This document shows positions 8,471-63,842 of a stretch of DNA of 64,000 nt, piece after piece. The notes below the pieces were generated by a model. The model had not been told where the DNA came from. It did no database searches and saw only the letters and a list, made by a program, of their open reading frames with translations. Source of the DNA: Dimorphilus gyrociliatus. Its lineage: Eukaryota; Animalia; Annelida. The stretch is taken from NCBI GenBank assembly GCA_904063045.1, contig CAJFCJ010000025.1, positions 992,001-1,056,000 on the forward strand, written 5' to 3'. A program made the position numbers and the translations under genes. The stretch's first letter is position 1, and each line of letters starts with the position of its first letter.

Positions 8471-8472
<2 letters not shown>

Positions 8473-10436: not shown

Positions 10437-10446
<10 letters not shown>

Positions 10447-10489
<43 letters not shown>

Positions 10490-10502
10490 GTGTGTGTGTG
10501 TG
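10447..10502. repeat. (AG)n/(TG)n compound microsatellite
   Basis: agagag...gtgtgtg tract. Confidence 0.9.
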
Positions 10503-12218: not shown

Positions 12219-12255
<37 letters not shown>

Positions 12256-27872: not shown

Positions 27873-30800
27873 ATGACTGAAGACAATTCATCTTGGAAGA
27901 AACTCTTCTTTGAATTTTCCCAAGATACAACCTTTCACGGCGTAAAATACATCACAAAGCCAACTAAGTTTGAATTTCGGAGGTAAGTTCCTGAAAATCT
28001 TTCTTAAAAATATTTTATCTCTACCTTAGTAGCTAAACAGATAACGAACAGTGTGATATACTTGTTCAATTCTGCACGATATACAGTATATTGAGTACTT
28101 GAAGATTTCTCTTCCATATTGGTTGTATTGTATTATTCTATTCAATAAATACAATTCATAATTTGGTTATCTTGAACATTTTCCAAGAAAATTCAATACT
28201 TAAAACGTATTGTTTTGACAGTTTAATAACGTCCAACTCATACGACAACACAATGTAATTTATTTTAATAGTTAAAAACTAATAACATAGTCAACTTTAA
28301 ATTTGTATTGACATTATTCGCCATTAATAATTGATAACCGCCTTAAATTTACTATATATACTGTATATAAACATTGTAATACACATCTATATCTATATAT
28401 TTACCTATATATATATATATATATATAATATACAAGTCATTCTGAATTATTTAATAATAATCTTTTAAATCAGGCTAATTTGGATATTAATAATTCTCTC
28501 CGCCTCGGCATTCTTCACTTATATTCTAATTGTTAGATTTTTGGACTATTTTAGCTATCCAAAAGCTGTTGATGTTGAAGTTATTTATACAAAACAATTA
28601 GATTATCCACTTATTACGTTTTGCAATCAAAATGTCTACAAAGCAACTGCAACTGTAAAACGTGGTGTTTTCGATACTTTTGAAAGACATTTTAATAGAA
28701 AGGCAACTAAAAGAGGTAAAAGGAAATATACTGCATTTCTCATAATAAGATATTTATTCATCCACATAGACACAGCATGCACAGATGATTTTAGATTAAT
28801 CCTCAATCGAATTCTTCTTCATCCTTCTAATAATTTTAAATCGGAAACTCATGTAAATGTAACGCTTGGTGTTTGCAAATATACTTGCATCAATTTGGCT
28901 CTAATTGATTGTAATTCATTTCTGTACATTCAGTCAAATTTGACATGTTTATTACTTCAAGCTAGCCATCAAACGCCAAATATTACGTTTCAAGAATCTC
29001 AAGGCGTTGATTACTATTCAAGGTCAAGATGCGACAGTTAGTTTACAATTATTACTTCTTTAACCTTTAACGCTTATTACTTTTCACTTACGCGTCGCTT
29101 ACTCCTGTGAAATTGGCTCATTTTAGGCAAGGAGAGTTTTTGCTCTTTCGATTTAGACTTTTGCAACTTTTATCAAGTGAAAAGTGATGATATCGACTGG
29201 CAGAGAAGAAAACTTGGCAGTATTCAAACTCTTTCGGGACCGGACAAAGATCATACAACTGGATCCGGATACTTTATTTATTTGGAAGGGGGGAAAGAAC
29301 AACTGGGACGTTTAATTTCGTCTTGGTATTCGACCAAAAATTGGAAGAAAACGTGCATTACTTTCTATTATTTCATGTATGGATCGTCAGTAAATAAATT
29401 ACAGTTTTATGTTGTTGACCCTGACAACTATAGTTATAAACTTTGGGAAAAAATTGGTTGTCAAGGAAACAGATGGTCTGTAAAATAAATAACTATGCAT
29501 ATTTGATCTAATAACCCAAGATTAAGCCTACCTAATAGATTTAAATACTTTTTTTTAGGTTTAAGGCAACGATTGTCCTAGATCTAGAGCTTTTTCACTT
29601 GAGATTCGATGGACTTTTGGGAAGGGGACAGCGTCATATTATTGCTATCGATGATATCTCTGTATCAAGCTGTCAAAAACGTATGACGGCAAATTATTTT
29701 CAAGTCTTCTATAAGACGAAACTGTTAATCTTTCATCTAAAAAAATATCTGTTTACCCAATTCAGAGTCGAGAGATTGTAGAAATGATAAAACGGGAGAT
29801 TTATACAGAGGAAATCAATCATTTAGTATAAATAATAGACGTTGTTTATACTGGAATGATGTTCATTCTGTCGAGTTGTTGTTCTTTGAGGACGAAACAA
29901 TTCGGCAGACTAAAAACTTTTGTAGGAATCCTGGAGGTAGAAAATCCGAACCTTGGTGTTTCGTACAACGAAACCCTCTTCTTTGGGAATATTGTAATAT
30001 TCCTTTATGCGGTTCGTAAGAAAATGATCATTTTTCCAGTTCGGTAATCGTCTCTTGTATTCTTTTTCGTAGAAAGCATCGATTCAACAAATAAGACGAT
30101 TTCAAAAGTCGGCGCTAAAAAGGGCGCTGACTACGGTAGGTTTTATTCATTGTTCATGATTTATCGAAGAGAAATTCAGATATTTCAAAGATAAAAAGTG
30201 TTTTTATAATAATTTTATAGAAGTATCGATCAGCTGCGCATTTGAAAATTCATTTATTTGCGGTTACACGATTGCTTCCGATTCTGAATCTTTCATCTTT
30301 AAATTGGAAAATGGACGATATCTACAACTGCATTTTGGCCCTGGAATGGATAGTACTTACTATAGTCCTCTCAAAGGTTCCTCTTTTCCTTTTCTCTTTG
30401 TCAATCGATCATCAATTCCGTCTCTCCCTCTCTTTCTTGTCGTTTAGGGAATTATCTCTACGTTGACAGTCAACTGGCCGTTGAAAATTCCAAATCGTGG
30501 ATTACTTCTCCTCAAATTTTCCTTCGTCAATTATCGTGTTTGTCGTTCGTTTGTTCTAAGAAAGGACTAAACTCCCTCGACGTGTATCTTCTTAAAGAGG
30601 GAAATCTTCGAATTCCCCTCTACGAAGTTGACGAGTCGACTGTTGGTTGGAGTGAAAAGACTGTTGCAATTCGTTATTGGCCAAAAATTTCATTCGGGTT
30701 GACGAGCATAGTCTTTGAAGCTGTTCACAAATTTGGATACGACAACTCTTTGGCAATTGATGATGTGAAATTCAACGAAGGTTACTGTTCAATTGCAGGT

Positions 30801-33800
30801 AAGTCTGTTTTATTAAACTGCAATAATTTACTCTACTGATTGTCACGACGGTTGTTTCCAGAATGCGAAAGTGGGAAATATCAATGCCAAAATGGAAAAT
30901 GCATTAGCAATGAGCAAATATGCGATGGAATAAACGATTGTTTCGATAATAGCGACGAAGAGATTCCGTGTTGTAAATAGATTTCTTTACTCTATTAATG
31001 ATAGGTTTCTTGAAAAGACTCTAATGAGGAAACTCTCTTTCTCGACAGCATCGTTTGATTGTAACTTTGATGGTAAAACCTTATGTGGTTATATAATAGA
31101 AAATACAGTTAGTTATTACAAATGGGAAAAGAAGATTGTATCCTCTTTGAACAGTCAGTTAAAGATTTCTTCATATTTTATAATTAGTTTTTTGTTTTAT
31201 CTTTGCCCCTGAGCCTTCATTCGTAAATATTTTACATATTATGAATCGTCCCAAAGGGATATTTTAAATTACAATTTAATGAATTATTTCTACTGTAATA
31301 GTACTAGCTAAATTGATATTTGAAAACACAAGATTTCTCTCAGAATATAAATAATGTCTCTTCTCTCTTTCAGTAACAATGCTTGAAGTGTTTAGCTATG
31401 GACCTCTTGTTACAGCCTCAGCTTTTTTAAGATCACCATTTTTGCTAACTTCAAATCGGACGTGTGCTCGTTTTTCAGCAATTTTTAGTCGTACGCATTC
31501 GGCAACTTTAAATATTTATGTCAATTATAAAACAATGCCGACAAAGCTTGTTACTACAATTACGACAGTTGGAAATAATGAAATATCTCTACAGACTATT
31601 CCCTTACCTCCCAATGTAGTAATTTCGCTAGTTTTTGAATCTCGAATGGATACTTTTGGACACAAATTATTAATCGGAAATATATCTCTTGATCGCCATT
31701 GTGCTAATTTTGAAACTGCAATTGGTTTAAACTGTACCTTTGAATCAAATATACTATGTGGTTACATTGTTGAATACCAAAAACACGGATATTCTTGGTA
31801 CAGATCCCAAACGAGTCTAGCGAGCAGTAGTGGGCCAAAAAAGGATAACACTCTAAAAAATAACCGTCTGTTCTTAAGCATACAAAATTATGTCAGCTAT
31901 TATTAACATTGAACTTTGTTTTACAGACGGCTTTTTTATGCTCACTAAAGGTATTGTTGGTGTAGAAGGAGATGTTGCTAAAATGACAACACCTGCTTTC
32001 AGCATAACAATGCCAAAAGTATGCTTCTCTTACTATTATCACATGTATGGCAGCATGGTCGGAAAACTTCAAGTGTTTCTGCAGTACAATGGCTTGTTTA
32101 TTACTATTATAGGCATATCTATTTACTAAGACACATTTTCTTCTATATTATAGATAGTATAAACAATATAATATACCAGCACGCGTTAAATCATGGAAAC
32201 AGATGGATTCTTAATGAAATACTGATTAAAAAATCTCAAAATACATCTCTTAGAATAGTCTTTCAAAGTATTCGCGGTTTTGATAGAAGTAATCTTTTAG
32301 GTTTAGATGATATAAGGCTCTACAATGGTTTCTGCGAAACACTTAGAGGTTATCATTAATCTCAACAAAAAATTATACAACACTAAATCAATATACCATG
32401 GCTTTTTTTCACAGATAAATGTATTAATTCAAGTTTTCAATGCAAAAACGGAAAATGTATTGACAAGAGTCTGGTTTGCAACGGAGAAAGCGAATGTTTC
32501 GACGGAAGTGACGAAAGCAATTGTTCCGATTGCCTACACGACATTCAAGGCAGATTCTACACAGGAAAACTTTCAACAACCGAATCTGGAAAGAGATGCA
32601 TGAGTTGGAAAGAGGCTGTTGGCGAAACGCAAACCACCATCTCAGTAGAGACGGGAGAGACGAGTTTGACAGAAATGACAAACTATTGCAGAAACGTTAA
32701 CGGAAAGAAATCTCCGTGGTGTTACGTATCAAAAGAAAGATGGGAATTCTGCAGCATTTCCAATTGCGGTACAAAGATTAATATTCCAATTCAAAAAATA
32801 TCTCTTTCGCTTGAAACGAAAGAAACAATAAACTGTAAATATTTGCAGAATGCCGAGAAAATCAATACAGATGCAACAATTCGGCTTGTATTTCTTCAAA
32901 ACAAAGATGCAATGGAATATCGGAATGTCCTCATAAAGACGACGAAGAATCGTGCAGTAAGAATTCACAAGAACGTTCTTTCTAAGTTTAAAATCATAAT
33001 TCCACTTAGATTCAACGATATCATGCGACTTTGACGATCCTTTTATGTGTGGATATTCAATAATACCATCCGATAATGGTTATAGATGGTTTAGATTTAA
33101 TTTTAAAACGCCATCGGTAAACACGGGACCACACGCCGATCACACAACAATCCATAAAACAGAAAGAGGTTAACAACTAATCATATTTAAAGCTGTATCA
33201 CTACATAAGAATTCTCTTTTCAAGGTTTTTACATGTACGTCGAATCAACGCAGGAAGGAACATTTTTGAAAGGAGGGGATGAAACATATCTACTAAGTCC
33301 TCTCTCTCATATTTACGGAAATTTTTGTCTCAAATTCTTTCATCATTTAAAAGGCAGAGATATAAATATATTGAGAGTATACAGAAAGATTGGAGACATA
33401 TATTCTCCATTAGGAAAACTAGAAGGTCAATCACAGAAATATATTTGGAAATCATCGGAATATACAGTCAATAAAATCACTCATCAGATAGTATTTCATT
33501 ATATTAGAGGAGTTGATTTCAGAAATGACCCTGGTATTGATGATGTTCTCCTATATCCTGGAAATTGTAAAAGTAACCAACATTAACATTCATAACATTC
33601 TCTTTATTTCATACTGATTTTAATGCCAAAACATTCCGTTCAGCTCATCGAACTTGTTCACATTTTGAATTTACTTGTTCCAATGGCCACTGCATCAACA
33701 ACACTTACACTTGCGATGGATACGACAACTGTGGCGACTTTTCAGATGAACTAGTCTGCGGTATAACACCTCCTTCATTCCTATTATTCATTTAATCTAT

Positions 33801-36800
33801 TCCATTTCTTTCCTCTCCTCTTCCTATAGAAACGGAATGCAAGAGATCTTTGCAAGAACAATGGTATATAGGGACGAGAAATGTTTCGCAAACTGGCAAA
33901 AAGTGTCTCTACTGGAGGAACATGTCAAACTCTTTCAAGATTCCCTATCGTTTCCCGGATGAAAGTCTGCAAAGTGCGGAGAATTATTGCAGAAATCCAA
34001 CGAATAGAACGTTTGGTCCTTGGTGTTACGTTGATAAAGAGAGTGAAATGTGGGAATACTGCAATATCCCTAAATGTTCAGGTTTGTAGAATCAATAAGT
34101 TGAATAATAAAGAAAGTAAAAGAAAGTTGCAATCAGTTTTCCAAAGTTGTCAGTCGAACGAATTTCAATGCGCGAATGGAATGTGCATTGATAAAAAACA
34201 CTTGTGCGACGGAGTAAACGACTGCAACGATAGATCGGATGAAATGGAGATTTGTGGATCGGCGTACAACATCTCGTGTGATTTCAGTGATCGTTATATG
34301 TGTGGCTACACAGACGATAGTCCTAATTGGAACTACAGATTTCAAAGGAAAGGTTCTTTTGATGGTTCAGTGCAATCAGTAATTCGGCTTTTAACTACAA
34401 AATGGGATGAGTGTTTTCATGAGGATACGGCTGGAATTGATTATGAAGGAAATGTTCAGATTCGAAGTGATGGAATCACTTGTCAGAAATGGAATGTGCA
34501 ATTTCCTACTGCGCACGCTTTTTATATGAATGAGTTTTTCCCTGAAAAAAGTGTAGCCAAAGCTGAAAATTATTGCAGGTAATAAATTGTTTTCTCATGC
34601 AATGAAAGTGTAAAAATGTCTTTTCTTCTCAGAAATCCAGCTGTCTATGTTCCTGGAAAGAAGTATTCTCTTGCTCCACATTGCTTGTCGTCCGATCCAG
34701 AGATTTCCTATTATAGATATTGCTCTATTCCATTATGCAAAAGTAGTTTAAATGTTTTCACAGAATTTCTGATCTGTTTACAAAATTCATGCAATTAGAT
34801 ACATTTATAAAGACAAAACCATCGACTGAACAAGGCCAAATAGCCAAATTCAACAGTCCTAAAAGTCAAGGCTTTGGAGACTCATGTATCCAATTCGCTT
34901 ACATGTTGATTGGAGATGACGCCGGATCTCTAAAATTAATGTGCAGCTAATTTTTGTATCCTTATCTTCCCTATTTTTTTCAGAGTTAAATCTGTTTTTT
35001 GAATTGTTAAACAGGTTGAATACTAACAGCACCACTCGTTTGTTGTGGTTTACGGAGGGTAAGAAGGCGTCAACTTGGATTGAGGCGTCTGTTGATTTCA
35101 CATCGAATGACGAATTCTATTTGACTTTCCAAAGCGAATCTGGATTGAAAAGTCCAGGCGTCGCGTTGAAATACGTGAACATCAGACGAGGTTTCTGCCA
35201 TATTCAAAGTAATCATCATTGAATGATTTTGCCAAAGAGCACAATTAATTCTATAATGAAAATATTGTTTGCAGACGATTGCGTAGGAAAATTTTCATGC
35301 AAAGCTGATTCGAAATGTATAGAATCATCAAAAGTTTGCGACCATCTTGTTGATTGTATTGACGAATCTGATGAAGTTTCGTGTAGTAAGTTTCCGTCCA
35401 CTTTATCTTCAAGCTTGAGAATTTGACTTTTTATTTGCGAATTTTCTATTCAGAATGTTTGGATGACGAATACAAATGTAGGAATGGAAAATGTGTCAGT
35501 CGTAATAAATTACTCGATGGCATAAATGATTGTTATGATAACTCGGATGAAGATCATTCAAACCTCGATAGTCTAATTAGGGAAAAGAAAAATTGGAAGA
35601 ATATAAAAATGTTTGAAAAGAACAGCAATTTTCTAATTAATCGAACCATGTTTGCGGAAAAGGATTGGGAACCAAAGATAAATGGAGCTCACTTTGTCAG
35701 ATTTCTCACTGAAATGAGTCATCAAAGATCTGACTTAATATCAGAGTTTGTTATAATTTTTTCTATTGTTTGTCCTTTTCATTAGAGTTGCGTTTTGTTT
35801 TTGCAGTTGCGATTGGAGAGGAAGCCCGTGCAAGTACCAAAATGTTAAAATATTAGATAGATTTACGGATCATGGTCAATGCTTTTCGTTCAGTCGGAAA
35901 GGAGATAATGATACTCTTCTCGTTACAGAATCAGGTTGACTTTGGTCCCTTCAAAATTTTCTTTCAAGATCTTTTTTGGTCGATTGTTTTAGAATTAAAT
36001 TTTAACTGAGTTGTGTTTCAGGTGCTCAAGCCGGACTGAGATTAACTTTGAATATCGAATCGTACGAATACATGATTGGTCCTCACACCAATAAAGGAAT
36101 TAAAGTATTGTCGTCCAAATCTTCTGTTATTCTTCCGATGTATCTACGTTTCCTGTTTCTTTTCAGGTTTACTTGCACGATGCAAATGAAACACCGAGAA
36201 TAAATCATTTAGGATTCTCGTTAGCTCCTGGCTTTCACCATTCTATTGCCATAAAGAATACGAAGGTTTCACATAGTTTTATCTGTCTAATGCCACGTAT
36301 GATAACGTTGCTTGTTTGTTTCGCTACAGGTTTATAATCTGGAAAAGCCATGGGGAAATTGTGGTCGAAGTGAATTAACACATTTTGCAGACTACACTGC
36401 GAATAAATGTAATCTGGACTGTACGATTAAGGATATCTATAACAAATGTGGATGTCTGGCTCCGTATATGAATACTAAATTAAGTGAGTTGTTTTTGCTG
36501 TATTTTATTAATTAATTTAGCTATTTGTGAATGATATTTCTGATAAAAAGATAGGACTTATTGTGGATTCTATGATTATTTTAATTGCATTATTAAGGAA
36601 GGTAATAAATTTTTACAATTTTTTATCTTTACTAATTTTAATATGTTAACGTGTTTTGCTTAGAGGAAAATAGTCAAATTTCATTAAATAATTCCTGTAA
36701 ATGTCAACAAGCTTGCTTCCAGAACGTTTACGAAGTTTGTTATTATTTCATAATTCGTCCTAGTTTGAGAATAAGCATTTTTATTGTTGAACTCTTTTAG

Positions 36801-38542
36801 CCGGTTATATCATCATCGGCTCTTTCGGATCTCAGTGTCGAGAGAATCTTACAATTTGAAAATGAATCTTTACAGATAGAGTATGAGAATGCCGTGGATG
36901 TTAAAGCTAGATCAAGAATTACGGATTATTCAAATGAAATTACCATATTTTTTACGTTATACAACACTTTAGATAGCGTTCAAGAATTTTTTTTCAATAA
37001 TATTGCTATAAGTGGAATTGGCGGAATATCTAACAAGATTGAAAGTGCAACAATTTTCTATATGAACAAAACAAACGAAGATTTAGGAATAATGAAAAAT
37101 TATCTTCGTACATCTATCCAGAATTTTGAAGACAAACTTTTGAAAAAACACCAAAAGTTTGAAGCCAGCTTCAAGAATGTGGAAGATAAAATTGCGTTTT
37201 TCCGACACACCGAATATTCTCAACTATTCAATAAAACCATTTTAGAAAATGTAATGGAAAATTTAATACAGAATTTGAGTTCTTTGATTTCCAATGAAAG
37301 CTTTAACGCTATTAAGTTAAATGTTCGCATCTTATCAAATTGTTTGAGAGAAACTGAAAATATACAAATGCATTTAGTGAATTTAGCAACAAAGTTATCG
37401 GATATGCAGCTATACAGTTCTACATTTCAAAATTTATCAATTTCAGTAAGAAAGTATTTAGGATGCTTTCAAAATATTCAAAAAACCATCATAGCTGCTA
37501 AAAGATCCATCGAAATGTTTGACGAAGAATTCGAGACATTTTCTAGTGAGAGACAAGATATGTTCAGCTTTCTACAGAATTCCAACTACGATCTTGTTAT
37601 TAATAAAGAGAAAGCGATGTTTGCAGAAATTATTCGTTTATATCTTTCCGGTCAAAGCATCATTAAACTCTCTCGAAAATATCCAACAGATTTATTTGAA
37701 AAATCAAAGTTAAACGTGAATTTCTTAATTTCTCTCTTCAGAACAAAATTCACTGAAGTATATAAAATGTCAATAATACGTTTAAACAATGAAATTGTTA
37801 AACGATACTCTAAAACTATAGAAATCGCTAAGACCCTGAAAGATATTTTAGGAGAAGATAAGATTAGAGAAATAATAAATTCCTTTTCAATTTGGAAGAG
37901 ATATTCATTATCTCTATTAAATAAAAAGGTCACTTTTACCAGGACCAGAGATAACACTCCTATTCAAACCGAAGATTTTAAAGTTATTGGTGAGGTGATA
38001 AAAGATAATGTAGGCCTATATTTAACGCCTATTACGAATAGTCTGAACCATTTTCAAGAGTTGGTAGACGGCTATATAGTGAGGTTGAAAATGTCGTTGG
38101 ACGACGTTCTGGACATGTTTCACAGATATAAAAAAAAGGCCGAGTTGGGTTCGGATTTCGTTAAGGAAAATTTCCTCATCGTCGACGTTTTCTTTGGCGA
38201 ATTAAGCTATTCGAAAATCACGCAGAGAAGGGCATTTAACATCGAAGAACTCTTAGGTAATCTCTCTTTATATTATCACTTATACTGATAACTCTCTCTT
38301 CATTTCACTTCCATGTTTCAGGCAACGTTGGAGGTTTTATGGGTCTTTTATTAGGAGCCAGCGTTTTAACCGTCTTTGAGCTATTGGATTTGTTAATATA
38401 TAACATTTTGCTAAAACTTTCCAATGGTAGTCATACAGTAAAGAGTGATGGTGTTGTTTTGGAAAATGAACTAGTTAAAAATAATCTAGTTCAAATGAAG
38501 GAATTGGAAAATTTCACAACAAGCTCTATAAAGTATGCATAA
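27873..38542 (+). CDS. Giant DEG/ENaC (ASIC-like) subunit, copy 1, with PAN/MAM/kringle/LDLa ectodomain cassette; 34 exons, about 2621 aa
   Basis: Exons: 27873-27982, 28474-28715, 28770-29036, 29127-29475, 29559-29680, 29766-30011, 30073-30135, 30221-30376, 30448-30798, 30862-30972, 31049-31153, 31374-31865, 31927-32091, 32154-32348, 32415-32768, 32849-32956, 33010-33168, 33225-33572, 33644-33760, 33830-34081, 34137-34578, 34633-34742, 34799-34940, 35015-35208, 35275-35385, 35454-35745, 35807-35934, 36022-36104, 36167-36265, 36330-36483, 36551-36601, 36664-36734, 36801-38256, 38322-38542 (7866 nt, open frame). Core motifs: [12 protein letters not shown] (HG), TM1, [55 protein letters not shown], 10-Cys thumb, [23 protein letters not shown] (TM2). 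Confidence 0.9.
28770..29036 (+). other. PAN/Apple domain exon of channel copy 1 (equivalents at 42074-42340 and 53302-53568)
   Basis: [35 protein letters not shown] matches the 6-Cys PAN_1 pattern (C..F, CxxxC, C.SF.Y, C.L, DYY..C). Confidence 0.75.
29127..35560 (+). other. MAM/kringle/LDLa array of channel copy 1: MAM1-KR1-MAM2-LDLa1-MAM3-MAM4-LDLa2-KR2-LDLa3-MAM5-LDLa4-KR3-LDLa5-MAM6(KR4 nested)-LDLa6-LDLa7
   Basis: MAM: [52 protein letters not shown]. Kringle: [26 protein letters not shown]. LDLa: C..FQC.NG.CI....CDG.NDC.D.SDE. MAM3 is degenerate. Confidence 0.85.
29780..31092 (+). repeat. Near-identical duplicated tract, copy 1 = copy 2 (43039-44351)
   Basis: Exons and introns read as identical at a constant offset of 13259 (e.g. 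the ORFs at 29856/43115, 30242/43501 and 30540/43799 are identical). Confidence 0.9.
32454..36332 (+). repeat. Near-identical duplicated tract, copy 1 = copy 2 (about 45667-49545)
   Basis: Constant offset 13213 with only scattered single-base differences, introns included. Confidence 0.9.
37800..38409 (+). repeat. Near-identical duplicated tract, copy 1 = copy 2 (about 50995-51604)
   Basis: Identical from aaacgatactctaaaac through the last intron into TM2. Confidence 0.85.
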
Positions 38543-39021
38543 TAAAAGATAATAGCCTCCGTGACCTAAATAAATGTATTTAGACAAGAATTGTTATATA
38601 GAATATGACAAGATGTTTATACATATACCATTACTTCAAATGATTGAAGATCAATCGACTGGCGTTAGGTTCAAACAAATGTACATTTCGTATTTTATCA
38701 ATTATCACTTTTATTGGAATATCGAATCATTCTTATTTTTTGTCGTATTTAAATGTTTACTTTTACTAGTGTTTCTCTTTAAAAAGAAGAGAGCCATTCT
38801 TCCATTTAAGTGATAAAACTTCTTAAAACGTTGGAAAACATATCTCTATTTAAACTGAAAAGCTAATTATAATCTTTTATGTCCATAGACAATATACGTT
38901 CCTTATTTTCTTTCAATAAAGTAGATTCTTACATAACTGTTTAGCTAATATTTTATTACTGTATTTAACATACGACACGATTATAGATTGTGGGAAGAGG
39001 GTTTTGTATAGTTAAATGGTT

Positions 39022-39024
<3 letters not shown>

Positions 39025-39079
<55 letters not shown>

Positions 39080-39080
39080 A
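39025..39080. repeat. (AT)n(AG)n compound microsatellite between copies 1 and 2 (a similar one at about 40394-40454)
   Basis: catatat...atagagag tract. Confidence 0.95.
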
Positions 39081-40386
39081 AGAGGGAGAGTACAGGAAAT
39101 ATTTAATACAATACGTATTTAAATAAGCAACTCGTCATAAAGAAATATTGAGATAATGTTGGAAAACTTGAACTGAGGAGACTTTTTCTTAATTAAAAAA
39201 TGATGTTACTTAATTAATAAGGGCTAGAGAAAGAAATATTGAGGAGAAAAGCAAACATTGTTTATTTATAGGCTGGTTTTTATCTATCCCTAAACAGAAG
39301 AAAGTACTCATATAAACTGAAGTTTCATTAGAAATAGTCCCAATAGAGAGTTTGTTTTTGTCTTTCTTTATGTTGAAAACTAGTCTGTTAGGTGTTTCAG
39401 AAATTGATATATGAAATATGAGCAATTTTATGAATCTGTAAATAAATTATTATCGTATTTAATTAGCATAACGAGCCTGCCTCGAACAAAACATAAAGCA
39501 CCATAACACAGTAATTTAGTGAAAGGAAACTGAAAGAGATCGTAGAATAATGAGAAGAGAAGGGGGCAAAAATGAGAGACAGAGAATGATAATTATATAC
39601 TCGAATGACTTTTGATAGTGACTGTAATAATGACGATGAAGACTAGATGATTTACAGATGGATGACATAAAGCCGCAAAGTGGCATATATAGCAATACAT
39701 ATATGTATGTACATATTTATACAATTGTAAAATCGGTTTATGTATTATTTATAACTTGTACAGAGAGAAAAGAGCTATAACAAAGTCTTATTCGCTCATT
39801 ATTTCAATAATTTAATTATAAGATAAAAGCTAACTGATATGATAGACATAATATATATTTCTATACATCGCTCTCTAAGGTTTTATCAAAGTTTTTGTAT
39901 GTTTGTTCCAGCTGCGAAAAGACTATTTAATACTGTAGTCAGTCTGTTTTAGATGTTCTGAACATGTGGCAGATAGTCTCTATTCTATTCAAAAGCAGAA
40001 AATATGGTCAATTTATTTCCACTGTGCAAATTCAAGTTTATTTCGTTCATGTCTTTCACCTTTTTATCGAGTAGTAAACAGATAGAGTGCGTAACAATAA
40101 CTTTTCTGAAAAATTCTCCACTGTTCCTCCCCCTCCACCCCCTCCCCACCCCCTCTCTCTCTCAAATGCCAAAAGTTTTGGCTAAATAAGAGTTTCACAC
40201 ATTACTAAAAGTTCGTAAAAGTTAGAGGAGAGACCTTGTGTGCAAGAAGAAGAAGAAGAATTAGAAGAAGAAAAAAACATTACTAGTTCTTGAAGATAAT
40301 ATATGAATAAATTATTGATTTTATTTACCGTTATTATTAAACGCTTGGGCAATAAATGGAAGCGCAATATAACTGTTTATATGAAT

Positions 40387-40455
<69 letters not shown>

Positions 40456-52521: not shown

Positions 52522-55500
52522 ATGATTGAAAAGAAATTGAATTGGACAAGTTTATTCTACGGATTTTCACAAGATACAACTTTTCACGGCGTTAAATATA
52601 TTACTAAATCTAGTAAATTTCTATTAAGAAGGTAAGCATTTTCTTTAACATATATATTCTCTTTCAGAGATCGTTACCTTTTCTACATAGATCTGTTCAA
52701 TAAAAATGATCAACCAATAATCTCCAATAATATATAGTATACATATTGTTCTTTCCACAGCCTGAATGCATCGGTCAACATCGCGTAGATGCGCAATTCT
52801 ATATCAATATCAATTATAGATAAAACAAAACATTGCTACTATAACCATAAACTAATTAATTTATTGTTTACAACTTTCCCTATAAAACTAGACCCTAAAA
52901 TAATTTCTTTTATCTCTTCTACTTTTTACAGAGTCGTTTGGGCAATTCTTGTTCTAGTCTTGTCAACATTCTTCTCTTACATCATTATCATCAGATTTAT
53001 GGATTATTTCAATTATCCTAAAGCTGTTGATGTCGAAGTTTTGTATACTAAACAACTCGAATATCCAGTTATTACACTCTGCAATCAAAACGTCTACAGA
53101 GCATCAGCAACTGTAGAAACGGGCGTCTTCGACGCTTTTGAATCATATTTTACTAAAACTACACAAAACAAAGGTACGCCTCTAGTTGTACCTATTCATA
53201 TTAATAATTATTAATTATTAATCCTATCTGCCTAATTATCTTTATGATTTTTATGTAAATTTCTCTCTGTAACTTACCAATTCCAATATTTCTTCACTTA
53301 GATACAGAGTGTCAAGATGGTTTTCAAGTGCTTCTCAATAGCGTCCTAATTCACCCTAGTAGCGTCTTCATTTCGGAAATTCACGTAAATGTAACGCCTG
53401 GTGTTTGCAAATATACTTGTCTCAATTTGGCTTCGATTTCCTGCAATTCACTTTTATACTATCGATCAAATTTGACGTGTCTCTTACTTCAATCAAGTCA
53501 TAAAACCCCAAATACTCTTTTACAAAATTTCCAAGGCGTCGATTACTACTCAAGGTCAAGACGCGACAGTCAGTTTACAATTACACCTTCTTCTTTACCT
53601 TTCCACTATTATTCCTTTAATTCTCCTTCATTAATCTATTCAATGTGACACGTTTCAGGCAAAGAGAGCTTTTGCTCTTTCGATTTAGACTTTTGCAACT
53701 TTCATCAAGTCAAATTTGACGATATCGACTGGCAGAGAAGAAAACTTGGCAATATTCAAACTCTTTCCGGACCGGACAACGATCATACAACCGGATCCGG
53801 ATATTTTCTCTTTTTGGAGGGGGGCAAAGAGCAAATGGGACGTTTAATTTCGTCTTGGCATTCGGCGAAAACTTGGAAGACGAGCTGCGTTACTTTCTAT
53901 TACTTCATGTATGGATCATCGGTTAATAAATTACAGTTTTACGTTGTTGACCCTGACAACTATAGTTATAAACTTTGGGAAAAATCCGGATGTCAAGGCA
54001 AAAGATGGTCAGTTGAACGAAACGGAAACGTCAATGCAAAAGTATTGCCTAAACCATTGTGTTTTCTTTAACAGGCGAAAAGCGAGTGTCAGTGTAAACC
54101 TTGAATTGTTCCAAATTCGGTTCGATGGCTACACCGGAAGAGCAGATCGCCACGTTATTGCTGTCGATGACGTGTCTATCAAGCAATGCGATAGAGGTAA
54201 CGATGGAATATCGATTCAAAACTGCTCTATTCTATTCATAATTATGATTTTCAGAGTCGCAAGATTGCAGAAATGATAAAACGGGAGATTTATACAGAGG
54301 AAATCAATCATTTAGTATAAATAATAGACGTTGTTTATACTGGAATGATGTTCATTCTGTCGAGTTGTTGTTCTTTGAGGACGAAACAATTCGGCAGACT
54401 AAAAACTTTTGTAGGAATCCTGGAGGTAGAAAATCCGAACCTTGGTGTTTCGTACAACGAAACCCTCTTCTTTGGGAATATTGTAATATTCCTTTATGCG
54501 GTTCGTAAGCAAATGAATAGTTTCATTAAAACAGAATGTGTCTTTTAAATTATTATCTTATTTTGTTAGACTCAAAGGAAAAGGTAAAGATTGAAATTGA
54601 AGGTAAAAGAAGATGAATATATCGATTCATATTGGATGATATTTGTTTTGCTGTTTAAATTTAGAATCGTCGGTTGACTGTAATTTTGAAAAGAGTTCTA
54701 TTTGTGGTTATGATAAAAGTTCTAACACAAATGATTTCATGTGGACTCTAAGGAATGGAAGTTCAACCCATGATCACCTTGGCCCAACAATGGATAAGAC
54801 ATTTTACAGTCCATTAAAGGGTAAGCATAACCATTTTTTAATGACAACATTACGAGATTAAAGACTATAGACAATTGAATAGGAAATTTCATGATGGTTG
54901 ATAGTAGATATGCCGTTGAGAATTCAATAAGTTGGTTAGAGTCACCACCCGTACTGTTGAAAGTTTCGTGCTGTTTGAAATTTTACTTTTGCAAGAGAGG
55001 ACAGATAAACTTACGATTGTTTTTAATCAAAGATAATAATATACGTACTCCTCTAGATGAAATTATTGAAACAGCAAACTCCTGGAAATTGAAAACAGTA
55101 AATATTAACAAGTGGAAAAGAAGCTTGTTGATGTTTGTTAGAGTTTTATTCGAAGCGGAACATAAATTTGGATTTGATAGTACAATTGCAATAGATGAAA
55201 TAGAGCTGCAAAGAAGAAATTGTCGTTTGGAAGGTAGATTAACAGAGAGAGAACTGTAGATTTCAAGTCAGTTTATCTAAAATGAGGCAGCCGATAAGGA
55301 CAAAGGAATTATTTAGAATTTTTTAGTCTTTTTACTACTATTCACTTTTTGTTATGTTTTAATTGACACATTTATTAATAGCTTTGAAAAGACTAGCCTT
55401 GTTTAGGTGAGCTGAACTGAAATCTCTTTAAACCCTATACTTTTATTACTGTACACCCTATAAATTTTATACAACTTCTTTGTAGAAGTCTCATTTACAT

Positions 55501-58500
55501 ACTTGATTCTTTCAAATACAAAATACTTGCAGAATGTAAAACAGACGAATTTAAATGCAGTAATGGTAGATGTATCGACGGTAAAAAAGTTTGTAACGGC
55601 AATAACGACTGCTTCGACTATAGTGATGAAGAATTGCCTTGTTGTGAGTAGTTCTACTGGCAAAGTATTTGACCCAGATTTATTAATCATTAATTATTAA
55701 AGAATTAATATCTAACTACGTATGTTAAGTAACAAGCCGTTGTTCGTGTCTTTTTTTAGTCCTCCTCTTTGACGTCATGATCCTATATAGATTTTCTTTA
55801 ATTATTCCCAATATCTTAAAGATTATTATTAATTTAGGCTTTTTCATCTCTTTTCTCAATTAAAATTAATGACTACTCCCCTTAACATATGCTCTTTCAC
55901 TCTCCATAGCAACATTTCAATGCAACTTTACTGGAAAAACTTCTTGCAGTTACGTAATGGAGCATATTCTTCATTATTACAAATGGGAAAAGACTAATGA
56001 ATCAAATTGTTCGATTTTTACATGAACAAGTTTTCCATACACTTGATTACATAGAGAATTTTTCTTTAATTGCAGTCGGCTTTATGAAAGTATTCTCCTA
56101 TGGTCCTAAAGTTACTTCTTATGCAATTCTGAGGTCGCCTTCCATTAATACAAGCTCCGAAAGTTGTGCCGTTTTTTCGACATTACTGAATTCTTCAGTT
56201 TCGGCTGCTTTAAACATCTATGCTGATTTGGAAAAAGGGCCAACAAAAATTTTAGCTACTATTTCAAAATCACCTAATAAATATATAACAAAAAATATCG
56301 TTCCTTTACCGCCAAATGTTCAAATGAGTTTATCATTCGAGTCTCGTATGGATACTTTTGGACACGAAGCTTATGTTGGAAATATCTCACTTGATCGAAA
56401 TTGTTCTACTTATGAAACCGAAATTAATGTTAATTGCACGTTTGAATCGGAAATTCTCTGCGGTTTTATAATTGAATACGAAAAACACGGATATTCTTGG
56501 TATAGAACCAACAGCAGTTCATCCATATTCAATGGTCCACTAACCGACCATACGTTTCAAAATTCTAGTGAGAACACAATATCAACATCTTTCAGTTTTT
56601 CATAAGATTCGGAATTCTACTATTAAACCTTTCATTCCAACAGGTAGTGGAAATTTTATAATCACGAGAGGGTTGGTGGGCGTTAAAGGCAATAGAGCAA
56701 GAATAAGCTCGCCTAACTTTAAACCACAATCATCCATTTCCTGCTTATCTTATTACTATCATATGTTCGGTAGCTTAATCGGAAGACTCCAAGTCATCCT
56801 TCGACTTGAAGGTTTCTTTACTAATCCCTAAAAGGTTATTTAAATTTTCTAATCGCTATTCCATTTTTCTTACAGAAAAACTTACTATTCACGTATTCAA
56901 ACATGAATTTAACCATGGCAATGTATGGCTCCACAACGAAATTCTTATTCGTAATCAACAAAATGTAGAAATGAAAGTGATCTTTGAAAGTATTCGCGGT
57001 TTTGATAGAAGTAATAAAATGGCATTGGATGATATTTCTTTCTATAATGGATTTTGTCAAACTCTTCAAGGTTTCCTCCAATCCTTTTTTCATTCTTACA
57101 CAACAAAATCACTTTATATTCATGCAGCTCAATGCCTCAATTCGAGCTTTCAATGCCAAAATGGCCAATGTATTGACAAGAGTCTGGTTTGCAACGGAGA
57201 AAGCGAATGTTTCGACGGAAGTGACGAAAGCAATTGTTCCGATTGCCTACACGACATTCAAGGCAGATTCTACACAGGAAAACTTTCAACAACCGAATCT
57301 GGAAAGAGATGCATGAGTTGGAAAGAGGCTGTTGGCGAAACGCAAACCACCATCTCAGTAGAGACGGGAGAGACGAGTTTGACAGAAATGACAAACTATT
57401 GCAGAAACGTTAACGGAAAGAAATCTCCTTGGTGTTACGTATCAAAAGAAAGATGGGAATTCTGCAGCATTTCCAATTGCGGTACAAAGATTAATATTCC
57501 AATTCAAAAAATATCTCTTTCGCTTGAAACGAAAGAAACAATAAACTGTAAATATTTGCAGAATGCCGAGAAAATCAATACAGATGCAACAATTCGGCAT
57601 GTATTTCTTCAAAACAAAGATGCAATGGAATATCGGAATGTCCTCTTAAAGACGACGAAGAATTTTGTAGTATGTATTTAGTTATCGTAAAAAATTTTAA
57701 CTTAAAATACTATAGTATAGCAATGTTATTGCAGATTCTTCAATAACATGTAACTTTGAAGAGGATAACATATGTGGATATACTATTTTAATATCTAATA
57801 ACAATTATCAGTGGATTCGTACAAATACTCCGACACCCTCCCAAGGTACTGGACCTGATCATGATCATACTTATGGCAATAGAACAGGTATTACAAATTA
57901 CTTGAAGTCTGTATTGTTAACACCAGTTCCATTCGGGTTGCATAGGTTTTTACCTTTATGTGGAATCTACTCAAGAAGGGCCACCTTTGAAATTCGGTGA
58001 TGAAACCTTTCTCTTTTCTCCTATCGTCAAGCCAGTAAAAAATCATTGTTTACAATTCTTTTATCATATCTTCGGCTTGGATATTAACAAACTAAATGTT
58101 TATATGAAAGTAAACAACCTTTACAAGTCGCTAGCAAAATTCAATAAATCAACTCAGTTGCCGAATTGGTTTATGGCTGAATATTTCATTCGACCTAACA
58201 TTGAACAAATAGTTTTCCATTATATTAGAGGAGTTGATTTCAGAAATGACCCTGGTATTGATGATGTTCTCCTATATCCTGGAAATTGTAAAAGTAACCA
58301 ACATTAACATTCACAACATTCTCTTTATTTCATACTGATTTTAATGCCAAAACATTCCGTTCAGCTCATCGAACTTGTTCACATTTTGAATTTACTTGTT
58401 CCAATGGCCACTGCATCAACAACACTTACACTTGCGATGGATACGACAACTGTGGCGACTTTTCAGATGAACTAGTCTGCGGTATAACACCTCCTTCATT

Positions 58501-61500
58501 CCTATTATTCATTTAATCTATTCCATTTCTTTCCTCTCCTCTTCCTATAGAAACGGAATGCAAGAGATCTTTGCAAGAACAATGGTATATAGGGACGAGA
58601 AATGTTTCGCAAACTGGCAAAAAGTGTCTCTACTGGAGGAACATGTCAAACTCTTTCAAGATTCCCTATCGTTTCCCGGATGAAAGTCTGCAAAGTGCGG
58701 AGAATTATTGCAGAAATCCAACGAATAGAACGTTTGGTCCTTGGTGTTACGTTGATAAAGAGAGTGAAATGTGGGAATACTGCAATATTCCTAAATGTTC
58801 AGGTTTGTAGAATCAATAAGTTGAATAATAAAGAAAGTAAAGGAAAGTTGCAATCAGTTTTCCAAAGTTGTCAGTCGAACGAATTTCAATGCGCGAATGG
58901 AATGTGCATTGATAAAAAACACTTGTGCGACGGAGTAAACGACTGCAACGATAGATCGGATGAAATGGAGATTTGTGGATCGGCGTACAACATCTCGTGT
59001 GATTTCAGTGATCGTTATATGTGTGGCTACACAGACGATAGTCCTAATTGGAACTACAGATTTCAAAGGAAAGGTTCTTTTGATGGTTCAGTGCAATCAG
59101 TAATTCGGCTTTTAACTACAAAATGGGATGAGTGTTTTCATGAGGATACGGCTGGAATTGACTACGAAGGAAATGTACAAAAAACAGTTAATGGGATTAC
59201 TTGTCAAATCTGGCGTGTTCAGTTTCCCAAAGCTCATCCCTTTTATCTTGATAGTTTTTTCCCAGAAAAAAATATAACAGAAGCTGAGAACTATTGCAGG
59301 TTCAGATTTAATAATAGTATATTGAATATTGCTTTATTTAAAAGGTTTATCTCTTTAAGGAATCCATCAAAAAGCGTTCCAAACTATGATCACCTTGCCA
59401 AACCTTTCTGCATATCTTCGAGGAGTGTTAACCAATCAGTCGGCGATTGTAACTTGAAAGTTTGCCAATGTAAATATTGTTTGCATTAATGAAGTGCTTG
59501 TTTAGTTAACTTTCTATTTAGATTCATTTCTGAAAACGAACTGGGGATTAAGCCAAGGTCATATTGCTAGAATAAATAGCCCTATTGTTAAAGGTGGTGT
59601 TGGTGATTCCTGTTTAGAATTTATATTTTTAATGATTGGCGAAAACGCAGGATCTTTAACTTTAATGTTTGTTGAAAAAGTTAATCCTGACTGTTTGAGT
59701 TGGAAATCTTTGATATTTCTTTTTTTTAGTTTAAATAATGAAAAAGGATCGAATGTTTTATGGAAAGGAGAGGGAGATTATGGAAATACTTGGAAGATAG
59801 TATCTGTTAATATCAAATCAAATACCTCATTTTTTATAACGTTTTTAAGCGAATCCGGAGAAAAGAATTCGGCAATAGCAATAGGAAAAATTTCGCTAAA
59901 GAATGACTCTTGCCGAAAGGACAGTCTGTATTGTTCGCTTTGACTTTCTATTGTTCTCCAACAAAATATCTTTGATAAAAACAGATTGTTCTGGAATGTT
60001 CCAGTGTAAAGATTCTTCCGTTTGTATTGATAAGAAAAGAGTTTGCGACGGTTTAACCGATTGCAAAGACAGTTCTGACGAAAATTCCTGTTCAAGTAAG
60101 CGAATGAGAAGAAAGAGAAAAAAAACAACAGGCTCTTTCATTATTGTATTCCATTAATTCACTTTTCCCCCTTGTAGGCTGTTCAAACGACAATTTTCAA
60201 TGCAAGAACGAAAGATGTATAAGTCTTTTTAAAATAGACGATGGAAGGAACGATTGTTTCGATAATTCAGATGAGAATATTTCGTATTATTATCCGAAAC
60301 TTGCGAAACTAATTTCAATGAAGAAAGAAGAAAACAACTCGAACGTTCATTCTTTTTCGAATAGAAACTGGAATAAAGATTACGTCTTCTCTAAAAAGGA
60401 TTACGAACCGGATATTGAAGGTATTCTTATAATAAAAAAAGGAAAGAGGGACCGAGAAGAGGGAAGGAATGGGTGGATGAGTGAATGAGTGAATGAGTGA
60501 GTGAGTGAGTGAGTAGAAGAGAAAATGACAAGATAATTTGAAAAAAAAAAAGAGTCTATTAACGAACAGGTTTAGAATTTCGAAGTTTCCTTGAAAATTT
60601 ATCCCATCAACGAGAAAATCTTATTTATGAGTAAAATTATTAAATTCAAATTTTGTGGTTTATTCAATTTACATAATAATATTTATCTTCTTCCTCTTCC
60701 TTAGTTGCTCTTGGCAGGGGAAAAGTTGCATTAGTCAAAATATTAATATGTCTACTAAATTTACCGATCACGGTACGTGCGTTTCCATCAACGGAAACGA
60801 AGCGAATAGTAGTCTCTTTACTGAAGAATCGGGTACGTTTTGTCCATTCCACATCTGCTAAGTGCATTTTTGATTAGATACTAACCCTAAAAGGGACTCA
60901 AGCGGGAATGAGCTTGACGCTTAACATCGAATCTTACGAATACATGATTGGTCCGCATAAGAATGAAGGAATAAAGGTTGAGAGCTTTTTACTTCAAGTC
61001 ATAACGTTCCCCTTAGAGTTTAATTCTATCTTATTAAATACGAAAATATTATTCCCATATATTTAGGTTTATCTACATGACGCTAAAGAAAGTCCAAGAA
61101 TCAATCACCTAGGTTTTTCTCTCGCCCCAGGATTTCACCATTCGATTGCTATCAAGAACACAAAAGTGATTTAAATTAAGGAAAGATCTATGAATAAGTG
61201 ATTAACACTCTTAAATGATTTACCTTAAAGGTGTTTAATTTAGAAAAGCCTTGGGGAAGTTGTGGCGAAACAAAATTGAACCATTTTCAAGATTACTCCC
61301 CTAATAAATGTAATTTGGACTGTTCGATTTCTGATACCATAAGGAAATGTGGATGTCTAGCCCCCTACATGAACAGCATCACTAGTAATACGACTGATTA
61401 GCTTATGTGGAGAAGGTAGTCTTTGAGGATTTATAGGCAAAAGAAATGAGTATGCCTCAACAACACAAAAAGGATTATTCCTATAGCGACTGTATAAAAA

Positions 61501-61937
61501 TTGATTTATTAGGCATTTTCTTCCAGAAGGCTGTCAAATAATAAACTATAATCCTCATAAGCCTAATCTTCTTTTTCTTCTTTTTCTTTTCCTCCTATTC
61601 TACCTTTTTTTCTTTACATCTATAAAATATCCCAATAATGCAGAGGGTCAATTCTCTTTATCCTCGTTTTGTTGCAGATGATAATTATTGCGGTTATGAA
61701 AAATACTTTAACTGCATCGTACAGCACTGTAAGTAGGAATGTTACAGTATATCTATTAGTATATGCAATTGTAGTTAGTATTAAAACGGCTTAAAATGAA
61801 AGGATTTTTTTGTTTGCAACAGCGGATGAGAGCGTTAATCTCTCCTTCAACGAATCTTGTAAATGCCAACAAGCCTGCTATCAGAATATCTTTGAAGTTT
61901 GTTTGTTAAATTTTTTTGCTAAGATTATTACAGTGGG

Positions 61938-61976
<39 letters not shown>

Positions 61977-63842
61977 AGACAGACAGACAGACAGACAGAC
62001 AAAAGGCGGAGAGAATAAAGATGGGTGGCGGAAGGGAAAGATTGGACAAATAAAACTAATATATTTTTTTTCGTTAAGCCGGTAATTTCATCGTCGGCTT
62101 TGTCCGAACTGAGTGCCGAAAGAATTCTTCGTTTCGAGAACAAATCCCTTCAGAAGGCATACGAACAAGCTTTAGACGTTAGGGCAAGGTCAAGGATAAA
62201 GGAATATGAAGAAGAGGTTACAATATTTTTCAATTTGGCTAGCACATTCGAAAACCTGCAAGAATTTCTAATGAAAAACATTCGAATAAATGTCGCCAGT
62301 GGAATATCGAATAAAATAAACAACGCTGTAGAATTTATTATCAAACAGACGAACAACGATATCGAATTATTTAATAAAGTATTAAATTCAATATTTATCG
62401 ATTTGAAAAGAAATTTAATCGATAAATTAAACGATTTAGAAGATTTAGTAAAAAGACTAAATATCCATCTGGATTTAATGTCCTTTACCGATAAATCTTA
62501 CGAAATTCAAAGAAATATTTCATGGATGCTTCTAGATAAATTCAACAGAAAATTGAATAAATTTCATCATTTATTCATTGAAAAAGATATTTATAGAAGG
62601 AAAATTCCCATCTTAACGAACTGCTACAAGAATTTTGCGGTTCTCCAGCAAAATATTCATAATTTAATGACAGCTTTCTCCAATGATTCATTACGTAATA
62701 ATATATCTAGTGAATTTCTTCTCGGCGTAAATCTGTATATAAATTGCTTTAAAGGGGTGGAAATTATCCTTGGAACATCCCTAAAGGAGATGGAGTTTGA
62801 CAGTACATTCGAAAGCTTTTATAGTGGGAGAGATTGCGTTTACTCGAATATAGAAGTCGCAGACATTAACCAAGTAATTGAACAGGAGAAGGCGTTATTC
62901 ATGGAGATATTTGAACTATATGTATCTGGTCAGAATTTAGTGAAATTGGGTTCCCAATATCCAATGTTCCTATTCGAAAAGTCGAAATCAACGGTTGACT
63001 CATTCTTCAATATAGTCAGATATAAATTTACTGAATTCTTTAAATTGGAATTACATAATCTTTTATTTCAAATACAACAGAGGTATTTAACCGTATTTCA
63101 GACAATTAGACGCCTTAATGGCATTCTCTCTGAGGATATTATACACGAATCAATTAGAGAATTCTCGATATGGAAGAGAACTTGTATATCTTTAGAAAAT
63201 AGGAAAATTAAATTCTTTCCAACAAGAATTAACATCTATCCAAATTTCTCAAATTTCACTACGCTAAACGAAATTATTATTGATAATACAAACGTTTATT
63301 TTCAACCAATACAAACTGGTTTAACAAACTTTCAGAACGAAGTTGGTCAATATATCGTTCAATTAAAAATCTCTTTATCAAACGTCCTTGAAATGTTTAA
63401 TCTTTACAAGACAAAATCGAAGCTAGAAGCCAATTTTATCAGGTAAGAGAAGAGAGAGAGAGAGAGAGAGAATGCGTACATGCATGTTTTTAATTCCTTT
63501 CTTTTCCGTATTTAGAAAGAATTTTCTAATTGCTGATATATTCTTTGCTGAATTAAGCTATTCAAAAATCACTCAAAGAAGAGCTTTTACCTCTGAAGAA
63601 CTTTTGGGTAGAACACATTTCCTTTCTTTTTATCTTTTCATGAATTTTACTAACATGTTTACAATATCTTCCTTTTTCTCTTCTCTCTCTCTCTCTCCCT
63701 CTCTCACTCACTCTCTTTTCTCCTAATAGGTAGTGTTGGAGGTTTTATGGGCCTACTTCTGGGAGCAAGTGTCCTCACAGTATTTGAATTAATCGACTTG
63801 ATAATCTACAACGTAATTGTGAAATTGACAGCCAAATTATAA
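52522..63842 (+). CDS. Giant DEG/ENaC subunit, copy 3, same architecture; 36 exons, about 2578 aa, very short C-terminal tail
   Basis: Exons: 52522-52631, 52932-53173, 53302-53568, 53659-54007, 54075-54196, 54255-54500, 54570-54602, 54665-54820, 54883-55233, 55533-55643, 55910-56008, 56076-56567, 56644-56811, 56876-57070, 57128-57481, 57562-57669, 57735-57887, 57946-58293, 58365-58481, 58551-58802, 58858-59299, 59360-59469, 59522-59666, 59730-59923, 59985-60095, 60178-60420, 60570-60630, 60705-60832, 60894-60976, 61067-61165, 61231-61384, 61678-61728, 61823-61896, 62079-63442, 63516-63607, 63730-63842 (7737 nt, open frame). TM2 [23 protein letters not shown], stop TAA at 63840-63842. Confidence 0.88.
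61941..62000. repeat. (AG)n + (AGAC)n intronic microsatellite in copy 3
   Basis: agagag...agacagacagac tract within intron 61897-62078. Confidence 0.95.

Follow-up and report, generated by a model that had tools for sequence, protein, structure and literature searches.

A 64,000-nucleotide (nt) stretch of Dimorphilus gyrociliatus DNA, referred to here as the window, raises the question of whether a single gene can encode both the pore of a DEG/ENaC ion channel and, set into the finger domain of that channel, a receptor-like array of PAN, MAM, kringle and LDLa modules, which we have designated the antenna. An initial annotation of the window had placed such genes between positions 27873 and 63842 and had given their products as proteins of about 2,600 amino acids (aa). 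Comparison of the window with itself revealed a tandem array. Searches by tblastn with exon 1 and with the exon that encodes the second transmembrane segment (TM2) located three copies on the + strand, designated A, B and C, and the starts and ends of these copies (Table 1) confirmed the limits of the annotated span. The coding sequence was uninterrupted in all three (7,866 nt in A, 7,836 nt in B and 7,737 nt in C) with no internal stops, and the protein models agreed with the annotated size in an open, phase-consistent frame. The three copies are tandem paralogous genes, each of which encodes one giant DEG/ENaC subunit of ~2,600 aa, approximately five times the usual size. We regard the architecture of this channel, as described below, as very probably correct.

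Channel core and antenna

The channel core is complete, with an HG motif, a first transmembrane segment (TM1), palm, beta-ball, thumb and a TM2 with its GAS filter, and by every criterion that could be applied to the sequence it is an ordinary ASIC/BASIC-like DEG/ENaC. The Pfam family ASC (PF00858, cut-off 23.6 bits) scored 40.3 bits on the exon 2 piece, 28.9 and 34.0 bits on the palm pieces and 23.6 bits on the TM2 piece; these matches covered profile positions 22-100 and 153-454 in the correct order. Exactly two hydrophobic segments were found in each of A, B and C, and in A these were residues 37-60 and ~2551-2579. The HG motif (TTFHG) was found at residues 19-23. Exon 2 aligned with residues 64-128 of ASIC5 (E 1.6e-11), which was its best match among solved structures, and with residues 46-111 of chicken ASIC1, and the strand following TM1 aligned with FPAVTFCNLN of ASIC5. 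The beta-ball sequence CDWRGSPC...GQC aligned with chicken ASIC1 from C173. The thumb cysteines were found in CNLDC, CGC, YCG..NC and CKCQQAC, a pattern of which the alignment with solved structures covers only a part. In all three copies TM2 contained the selectivity filter stretch (GAS), and the degenerin position was occupied by a small residue. The channel motifs quoted in the initial annotation were present in the models, and its numbering of the exon 2/3 and 26/27 junctions agreed with that of the curated genes.

Between the two parts of this core is the antenna, which occupies residues 118-1803 of A (1,686 aa). Its modules were called by running Pfam on every stop-free piece of copy A, and most of the matches were above the gathering score. 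The order in A was ASC (profile 22-100), PAN_1, MAM, Kringle, MAM, LDLa, MAM, MAM, LDLa, Kringle, LDLa, MAM, LDLa, Kringle, LDLa, the N-terminal part of a further MAM, Kringle, the remainder of that MAM (44-157), LDLa, LDLa and ASC (153-188, 224-321, 398-454). The N-terminal part of this last MAM, MAM6, was not scored by Pfam and was recognised by an alignment with the N-terminal part of MAM5 (50% identity over 26 aa). The antenna is thus composed of 18 modules (1 PAN, 6 MAM, 4 kringle and 7 LDLa), the same count as had been read from the sequence initially, and Pfam identified identical module types in the diverged exons of C. Each of the four kringles has six cysteines. LDLa 1-6 also have six cysteines each, and five of them have the D-x-S-D-E motif, which is K-D-D-E in LDLa3. 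LDLa7 (35454-35560) has only four cysteines, the fourth and sixth being absent in A, B, C and in a related gene of a second genome (6530-6640 of contig L005, described below), and it retains the acidic motif DNSDE. No piece scanned of the channel genes had a Pfam match to the EGF family.

The point at which the antenna enters the channel corresponds to about residue 124 of chicken ASIC1, between an aligned block ending at residue 111 and one starting at residue 173. ASIC1 has 61 residues between these blocks and the giant subunit has 13 plus ~62 residues that belong to no module, which indicates that the finger was split by the antenna, not replaced by it. With the helices assigned by inference, the insert appears to lie between finger helices alpha1 and alpha2, alpha1 being retained. 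The GRIP domain of ENaC is located between alpha1 and alpha2; it controls gating from its position as a wedge between the finger and the thumb (PMC6197857). The suggestion that the antenna is inserted in the finger was therefore supported, and it needed refining in that the finger is split after a predicted alpha1 that is retained, ~62 residues of finger follow the antenna, and a second insert of ~430 aa precedes TM2. An atlas search with exon 26 returned LDLa clusters only.

This second insert is encoded by exon 33, in which ~430 residues without a Pfam match lie between the last palm strands and TM2. AlphaFold2, given an alignment of seven relatives, predicted an all-helical bundle (predicted local distance difference test score 77, predicted template modelling (TM) score 0.68). 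The bundle had no match among the folds of the PDB (best TM-score 0.21), and its best neighbour in the AlphaFold DB was K1PHY3, which is named as an amiloride-sensitive channel (TM-score 0.38); R7T5W4, an uncharacterised protein, ranked ninth (TM-score 0.34). From their accession series we take K1PHY3 and R7T5W4 to be oyster and Capitella proteins, respectively. An ASIC-like open reading frame (ORF) of another organism, P0007, contained a shorter helical insert at the equivalent place. The helical insert, at the knuckle of the channel, may have arisen before the antenna and have a wider distribution.

Nearly all of the module exons are of phase 1-1 and the array is itself in a phase-1 position, a signature of exon shuffling, by which the array was built. 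In each MAM domain a phase-1 intron interrupts the module at profile position ~39-43. Kringle 4 sits at this same position within MAM6 and so probably entered through that intron. Alignment of A with B revealed 98-100% identity, introns included, over exons 6-10 and 15-29, and 64-89% identity elsewhere; B and C have other blocks in common. Such a mosaic of identity between tandem copies indicates recent gene conversion or unequal exchange. The near-identical blocks were 29761-31132 with 43020-44391, 32426-36472 with 45639-49685, and 41735-43286 with 52963-54516.

Evidence for a single gene

An arrangement of this kind could also arise if it were not a real single gene, that is, if a second gene were nested in an intron of the channel gene, if the gene model were an artefact, or if the copies were decaying pseudogenes. 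The junctions of the antenna with the core bear on this directly. At the left junction, exon 2 and the PAN exon are separated by a gap of 54 nt and share an open frame in A, and the phase-1 donor of the former meets the phase-1 acceptor of the latter. At the right junction, LDLa7 and the remainder of the finger are encoded by one exon in A, B and L005; in C this exon is split by a microsatellite intron. The whole array is flanked by the phase-1 donor of exon 2 and the phase-1 acceptor of exon 26. In the models of A, B and C, and by hydropathy, the antenna lacked a start codon context, a signal peptide, a membrane segment and a stop of its own.

Contigs of an RNA-derived run (X1) and of a DNA run (X8) were aligned with A over a stretch that ended before the right junction of the antenna, and 15 of the 26 joints were listed. 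Among the joints listed, ten GT-AG joints were present in X1 and absent from X8, and all ten were equal to modelled introns of A (30012-30072, 30136-30220, 30377-30447, 30799-30861, 30973-31048, 32769-32848, 32957-33009, 33169-33224, 33573-33643 and 33761-33829). One RNA contig spanned five of these confirmed introns and another spanned four, and an RNA contig was also found over 31374-31865, in the region of exons 11-14. Dividing the RNA depth over exons 1-3 by the fraction of each 200-nt bin that is exon gave values of 27.6, 28.1, 27.1 and 27.1, with 0 inside intron 1; this even corrected depth fits one spliced contig encoding the N-terminus, TM1 and PAN. In two stretches that are ~63% and ~81% exon, the X1 run contained 0.57 and 0.65, respectively, of the words sampled. 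It follows that the exons of the core are transcribed too.

The ratio of nonsynonymous to synonymous substitution rates (dN/dS) was 0.29-0.33 for the antenna and 0.29 for the part comprising finger, palm and thumb. In the diverged blocks, similarity between the copies was greater in exons than in introns. The cysteines of the antenna were kept at 94 of 96 positions in C, where 64% of the other residues were kept, and at 93 of 96 positions in L005. The genes are transcribed, spliced and under purifying selection.

L005 is a 16.8-kb contig (GC 26%) from the assembly of another sample, whose genome is richer in AT, and it was reached through a single-exon ORF that matched the large exon preceding TM2. 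Protein A was collinear with L005 over residues 88-2578 at 38-73% identity. The contig encoded, in order, NQNVY...alpha1, an intron, PAN, all of the MAM, kringle and LDLa modules in the same order as in A, LDLa7 with the finger remainder, the palm, the large exon and TM2. Both of the antenna junctions were intact, and LDLa7 and the finger remainder were in one open frame. A second, diverged genome thus has the same gene, with every module conserved.

The reading that this is not a single gene draws on the absence of the two key junctions from the RNA joints listed, and on the lack of any such annotated protein among the matches from the protein libraries. RNA support for the exon 1/2, 2/3 and 26/27 junctions is indirect for the same reason, which counts against the single-gene reading. 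On the other side are the open frames of the three copies, every one of which exceeds 2,570 codons, an antenna with no beginning, end or membrane segment of its own, the exon shared by LDLa7 and the finger, compatible phases, the spliced RNA, a dN/dS of ~0.3 and a collinear gene in a second genome. We consider a nested gene, a model artefact or decaying pseudogenes highly improbable, and this explanation is already close to refuted. The shared exon, the phases, the two hydrophobic segments, the spliced RNA, the purifying selection and the collinearity with the second genome together indicate a single gene that is neither nested nor misjoined, and so bear out the proposal of a channel fused in one gene to an ectodomain that resembles those of adhesion molecules and receptors.

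Possible role of the antenna

The best overall explanation of this architecture is probably that the antenna is a built-in extracellular device that binds matrix or a macromolecule and is coupled to gating of the channel. Taken alone, the coupling of antenna binding to gating is a nearly balanced matter, tipped slightly towards doubt. A fuller version, which we put forward tentatively as possible rather than probable, is that of a receptor-channel in one polypeptide, in which the antenna would sense a macromolecule, or the tension of a matrix tether, via the finger at the GRIP site, and in which the family would have been expanded and reshuffled by tandem duplication and gene conversion to suit different partners. 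By homology the subunits would trimerise, giving three antennas per channel. Each antenna would form a loop, and its two ends would be fixed in the finger, where ENaC has its GRIP domain, beside the finger-thumb interface. This interface controls gating in both ASIC and ENaC, and MAM, PAN and kringle modules are protein-binding or adhesive. Through the antenna the channel would be tethered to matrix or would bind a macromolecular ligand, and binding or tension would be passed to alpha1 and alpha2, with the result that the pore would be modulated or gated. Attached at the point equivalent to GRIP, the antenna is predicted to be in a favourable position for shifting alpha1 and alpha2 upon binding or on being pulled. 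A binding device coupled to gating is favoured by this site of attachment, by the largely intact LDLa motifs and by the lack of a conserved furin motif.

The main rival is a purely anchoring role, in which the antenna would serve placement or assembly only (adhesion, clustering, trafficking, or contact with matrix or cells) and an ordinary stimulus such as protons, a peptide or leak would gate the core. It is in keeping with this that the core has every usual channel motif, that MAM domains can be homophilic or oligomerising and LDLa modules function in endocytic sorting, as is generally known from the meprin/RPTPmu and LDLR families, and that equal constraint on antenna and core fits any essential role. 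A pure anchor could, however, sit anywhere on the ectodomain, whereas this array is inside the finger and not at a terminus, both of its ends appear to be beside alpha1 and alpha2, where the gating-control site of ENaC is located, and the site of insertion is kept in a diverged genome. We consider an anchoring role alone unlikely. It is improbable, to a greater degree, that this is a protease-gated channel in which the antenna acts as an autoinhibitory plug, an oversized counterpart of GRIP that is cut or removed to open the pore. The antenna appears to be at the same topological site as the GRIP domain, and kringle, PAN and LDLa modules are generally known as typical of protease and zymogen partners, as a plug of this kind would have it. 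No furin motif (R-x-K/R-R) was conserved among A, B and C, however, and none at all was found in A, which counts against an ENaC-like proteolytic switch. The flanks of the antenna also vary, being NRKATKR in A and TKKYT in L005, with KTTQNK shared by B and C, and a disposable plug would hardly be expected to keep all 18 of its modules over a long period.

Several observations weigh against a binding device coupled to gating. The ~62-aa remainder of the finger had no meaningful match in the PDB and no significant sequence match of its own. The kringles are without the Asp-x-Asp lysine-binding centre of plasminogen kringles, and lysine binding by them is not to be assumed. A dN/dS of ~0.3 is a measure of constraint and is silent on what the constraint serves. 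The Caenorhabditis elegans proteins EGAS-1 to EGAS-4 gave no currents in oocytes (PMC10424705), so that DEG/ENaCs bearing added modules may not work as simple homomeric channels.

The giant subunits were compared with known systems. With the ASIC/BASIC channels (ASIC5/BASIC and ASIC1; PDB 9mky, 6ave) they share two membrane segments, the HG motif, a strand of FPxxTFCN type, the CxxRGxxC...FTxxGxC beta-ball, the PWGxC palm, the Cys-rich thumb and the GAS filter, and they differ in being five times longer, with a 1,686-aa array in the finger and a ~430-aa helical bundle before TM2. The EGAS proteins are like them in combining a DEG/ENaC core with extracellular protein-interaction modules and in being functionally uncharacterised (PMC10424705, PMC5203786), whereas EGAS proteins carry EGF repeats and the giant genes carry PAN, MAM, kringle and LDLa modules, and far more of them. 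As far as the literature search shows, EGAS are the only described DEG/ENaCs with added modules, and a study of the spider-mite ENaC expansion (PMC5203786) mentions no such architecture. Like GRIP, the antenna appears to be a lineage-specific insertion between alpha1 and alpha2, peripheral in the ectodomain and beside the thumb (PMC6197857; site mapped by alignment). In contrast to the few beta strands of GRIP, it consists of 18 autonomous disulfide-bonded modules, has no conserved furin site and is unrelated in sequence. The GRIP insertion is of ~100 residues and has furin sites.

MALRD1, MAMDC4/endotubin and ectodomains of enteropeptidase type have MAM and LDLa modules in alternation, and phase-1 exons encode them. 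These mosaics are single-pass or secreted proteins without a pore, whereas here the modules include a PAN and four kringles, one of which is nested in a MAM, and form a loop within a channel subunit. Modules that tether or tune channels are known from MEC-4/MEC-10, with the matrix proteins MEC-1, MEC-5 and MEC-9, and from the CUB-LDLa auxiliary subunits NETO, SOL-1 and LEV-10; in those systems the modules are separate and act in trans, whereas here they are part of the pore-forming subunit. To our knowledge there is no direct demonstration of the matrix tether that the MEC-4 model assumes.

No DEG/ENaC with MAM, kringle, LDLa or PAN modules was found in full-text searches of the literature. 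The protein libraries were queried with single exons or pieces of the gene. In a representative library the large exon gave seven matches, none of them a giant annotated protein. In a word-indexed library the piece comprising TM1 and PAN gave none and the large exon gave three single-exon ORFs, all of which were also among the matches of the representative library. The claim of novelty thus held, in that these searches of the full-text literature and of the protein libraries found no characterised channel of this design; unstudied database entries are possible.

The means by which DEG/ENaC channels sense mechanical or macromolecular signals is a long-standing question. In these genes the presumed tether or receptor is covalently joined to the channel subunit, apparently at the gating site of ENaC, so that the coupling could be tested from one cDNA. 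For exon shuffling, the genes provide a case of phase-1 modules placed into the loop of an ion channel, with one kringle located at the intron position that splits the other MAMs. They extend the known range of DEG/ENaC size and design approximately five-fold. The architecture is one that a specialist would not expect and, being conserved in a second genome, it is not a one-off.

Gene models and surrounding sequence

First-draft models were made with a purpose-written exon-chain finder and were corrected by hand from the sequence, the RNA joints and projection from copy to copy. The finder located most of the exons, but it introduced spurious short introns and failed to find TM1, and self-trained splice matrices over-split the gene. 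The window is AT-rich (~32% GC) and the introns are mostly of 53-90 nt. B aligned with A exon for exon. The resulting features are listed in Table 1.

Table 1. Genes A, B and C and the exons of gene A, with positions in the window
Feature	Position	Strand	Content and support
Gene A	27873-38542	+	34 exons, 2,621 aa; curated model, open frame
Gene B	40911-51755	+	34 exons, 2,611 aa; exon-by-exon projection, AG/GT kept, open frame
Gene C	52522-63842	+	36 exons, 2,578 aa; projection and hand curation, Pfam on diverged exons
Exon 1	27873-27982	+	Cytoplasmic N-terminus, HG motif (TTFHG); first ATG after in-frame stop, GTAAGT donor; kept in B and C
Exon 2	28474-28715	+	TM1, post-TM1 strand, predicted finger helix alpha1; phase-1 donor; Pfam ASC 22-100, 40.3 bits
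Exon 3	28770-29036	+	PAN/apple, phase 1-1, first antenna module; Pfam PAN_1 32.6 bits
Exons 4-5	29127-29680	+	MAM 1; Pfam MAM 79 bits
Exon 6	29766-30011	+	Kringle 1, 6 Cys; Pfam Kringle 62.9 bits
Exon 7	30073-30135	+	63-nt linker exon
Exons 8-9	30221-30798	+	MAM 2; Pfam MAM 42-158
Exon 10	30862-30972	+	LDLa 1; Pfam Ldl_recept_a 39.5 bits
Exons 11-14	31049-32348	+	MAM 3 and MAM 4; exon 12 spans the MAM 3/MAM 4 boundary; Pfam MAM
Exon 15	32415-32768	+	LDLa 2 and kringle 2; Pfam 45.1 and 63.9 bits
Exon 16	32849-32956	+	LDLa 3; Pfam 35.5 bits
Exons 17-18	33010-33572	+	MAM 5; Pfam MAM 1-39 and 42-158
Exons 19-20	33644-34081	+	LDLa 4 and kringle 3; Pfam
Exons 21-24	34137-35208	+	LDLa 5, then MAM 6 with kringle 4 nested at profile ~39-43; Pfam LDLa, Kringle, MAM 44-92 and 91-157; splice sites set by hand
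Exon 25	35275-35385	+	LDLa 6; Pfam 31.8 bits
Exon 26	35454-35745	+	LDLa 7 and ~62 aa of finger remainder (to ...SHQRSDLIS) in one open frame, 35390-35782; Pfam LDLa
Exons 27-32	35807-36734	+	Beta-ball, palm, thumb; Pfam ASC 153-188 and 224-321; splice sites curated
Exon 33	36801-38256	+	Palm strand, ~430-aa predicted helical insert, pre-TM2 segment; Pfam ASC 398-434 at the end
Exon 34	38322-38542	+	TM2 with GAS filter, C-terminal tail; Pfam ASC 432-454, hydropathy

All of the introns in A, B and C are GT-AG, apart from one possible GC donor in A. This is in intron 13 of A (32092-32153), which has a GC donor (G|GCTTGT) if the splice sites homologous to those of B are used; these sites give exon lengths of 165 and 195 nt in both A and B. 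An in-frame GT alternative is present at 32084/32158, and its use would give a protein of 2,617 aa for gene A. For exon 27, the acceptor at 35807 was preferred to one at 35786, as its pyrimidine tract is better and it yields ...DLISDCDWRG, matching ASIC1. A candidate micro-exon of 33 nt (28222-28254) kept the frame and had good splice sites, and it was omitted as it is not conserved in B or C. In the bin of intron 1 of A that holds this candidate (28060-28259), an RNA depth of 3.5 was recorded.

Relative to A and B, gene C has two extra introns (60421-60569 and 63443-63515), which split the homologues of exons 26 and 33. Both consist largely of compound microsatellite, (GA)n and (GAGT)n, and a third, enlarged intron of C (61897-62078) contains (GA)n(GACA)n. 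ORF P0004, from a related species, ends at the same point as the 63443-63515 intron, so that this intron probably predates copy C. The intergenic DNA of the window is rich in (TC)n/(GA)n microsatellites, for example at 623-1105, 8387-8689 and 10361-10646. A scan of the window against Rfam gave no match.

Additionally, L005 contained ORFs downstream of its channel gene (11690-16215) with matches to LDLa, LRR, TSP1 and calcium-binding EGF, which are probably other mosaic extracellular genes. Upstream of the array in the window, a + strand gene at 17886-22304 encoded CC2D1 DM14 domains (Lgd/Freud-1-like), and a + strand gene at 25332-27356, ending ~500 nt before gene A, encoded two VWA domains and Cys-rich furin/EGF-like repeats.

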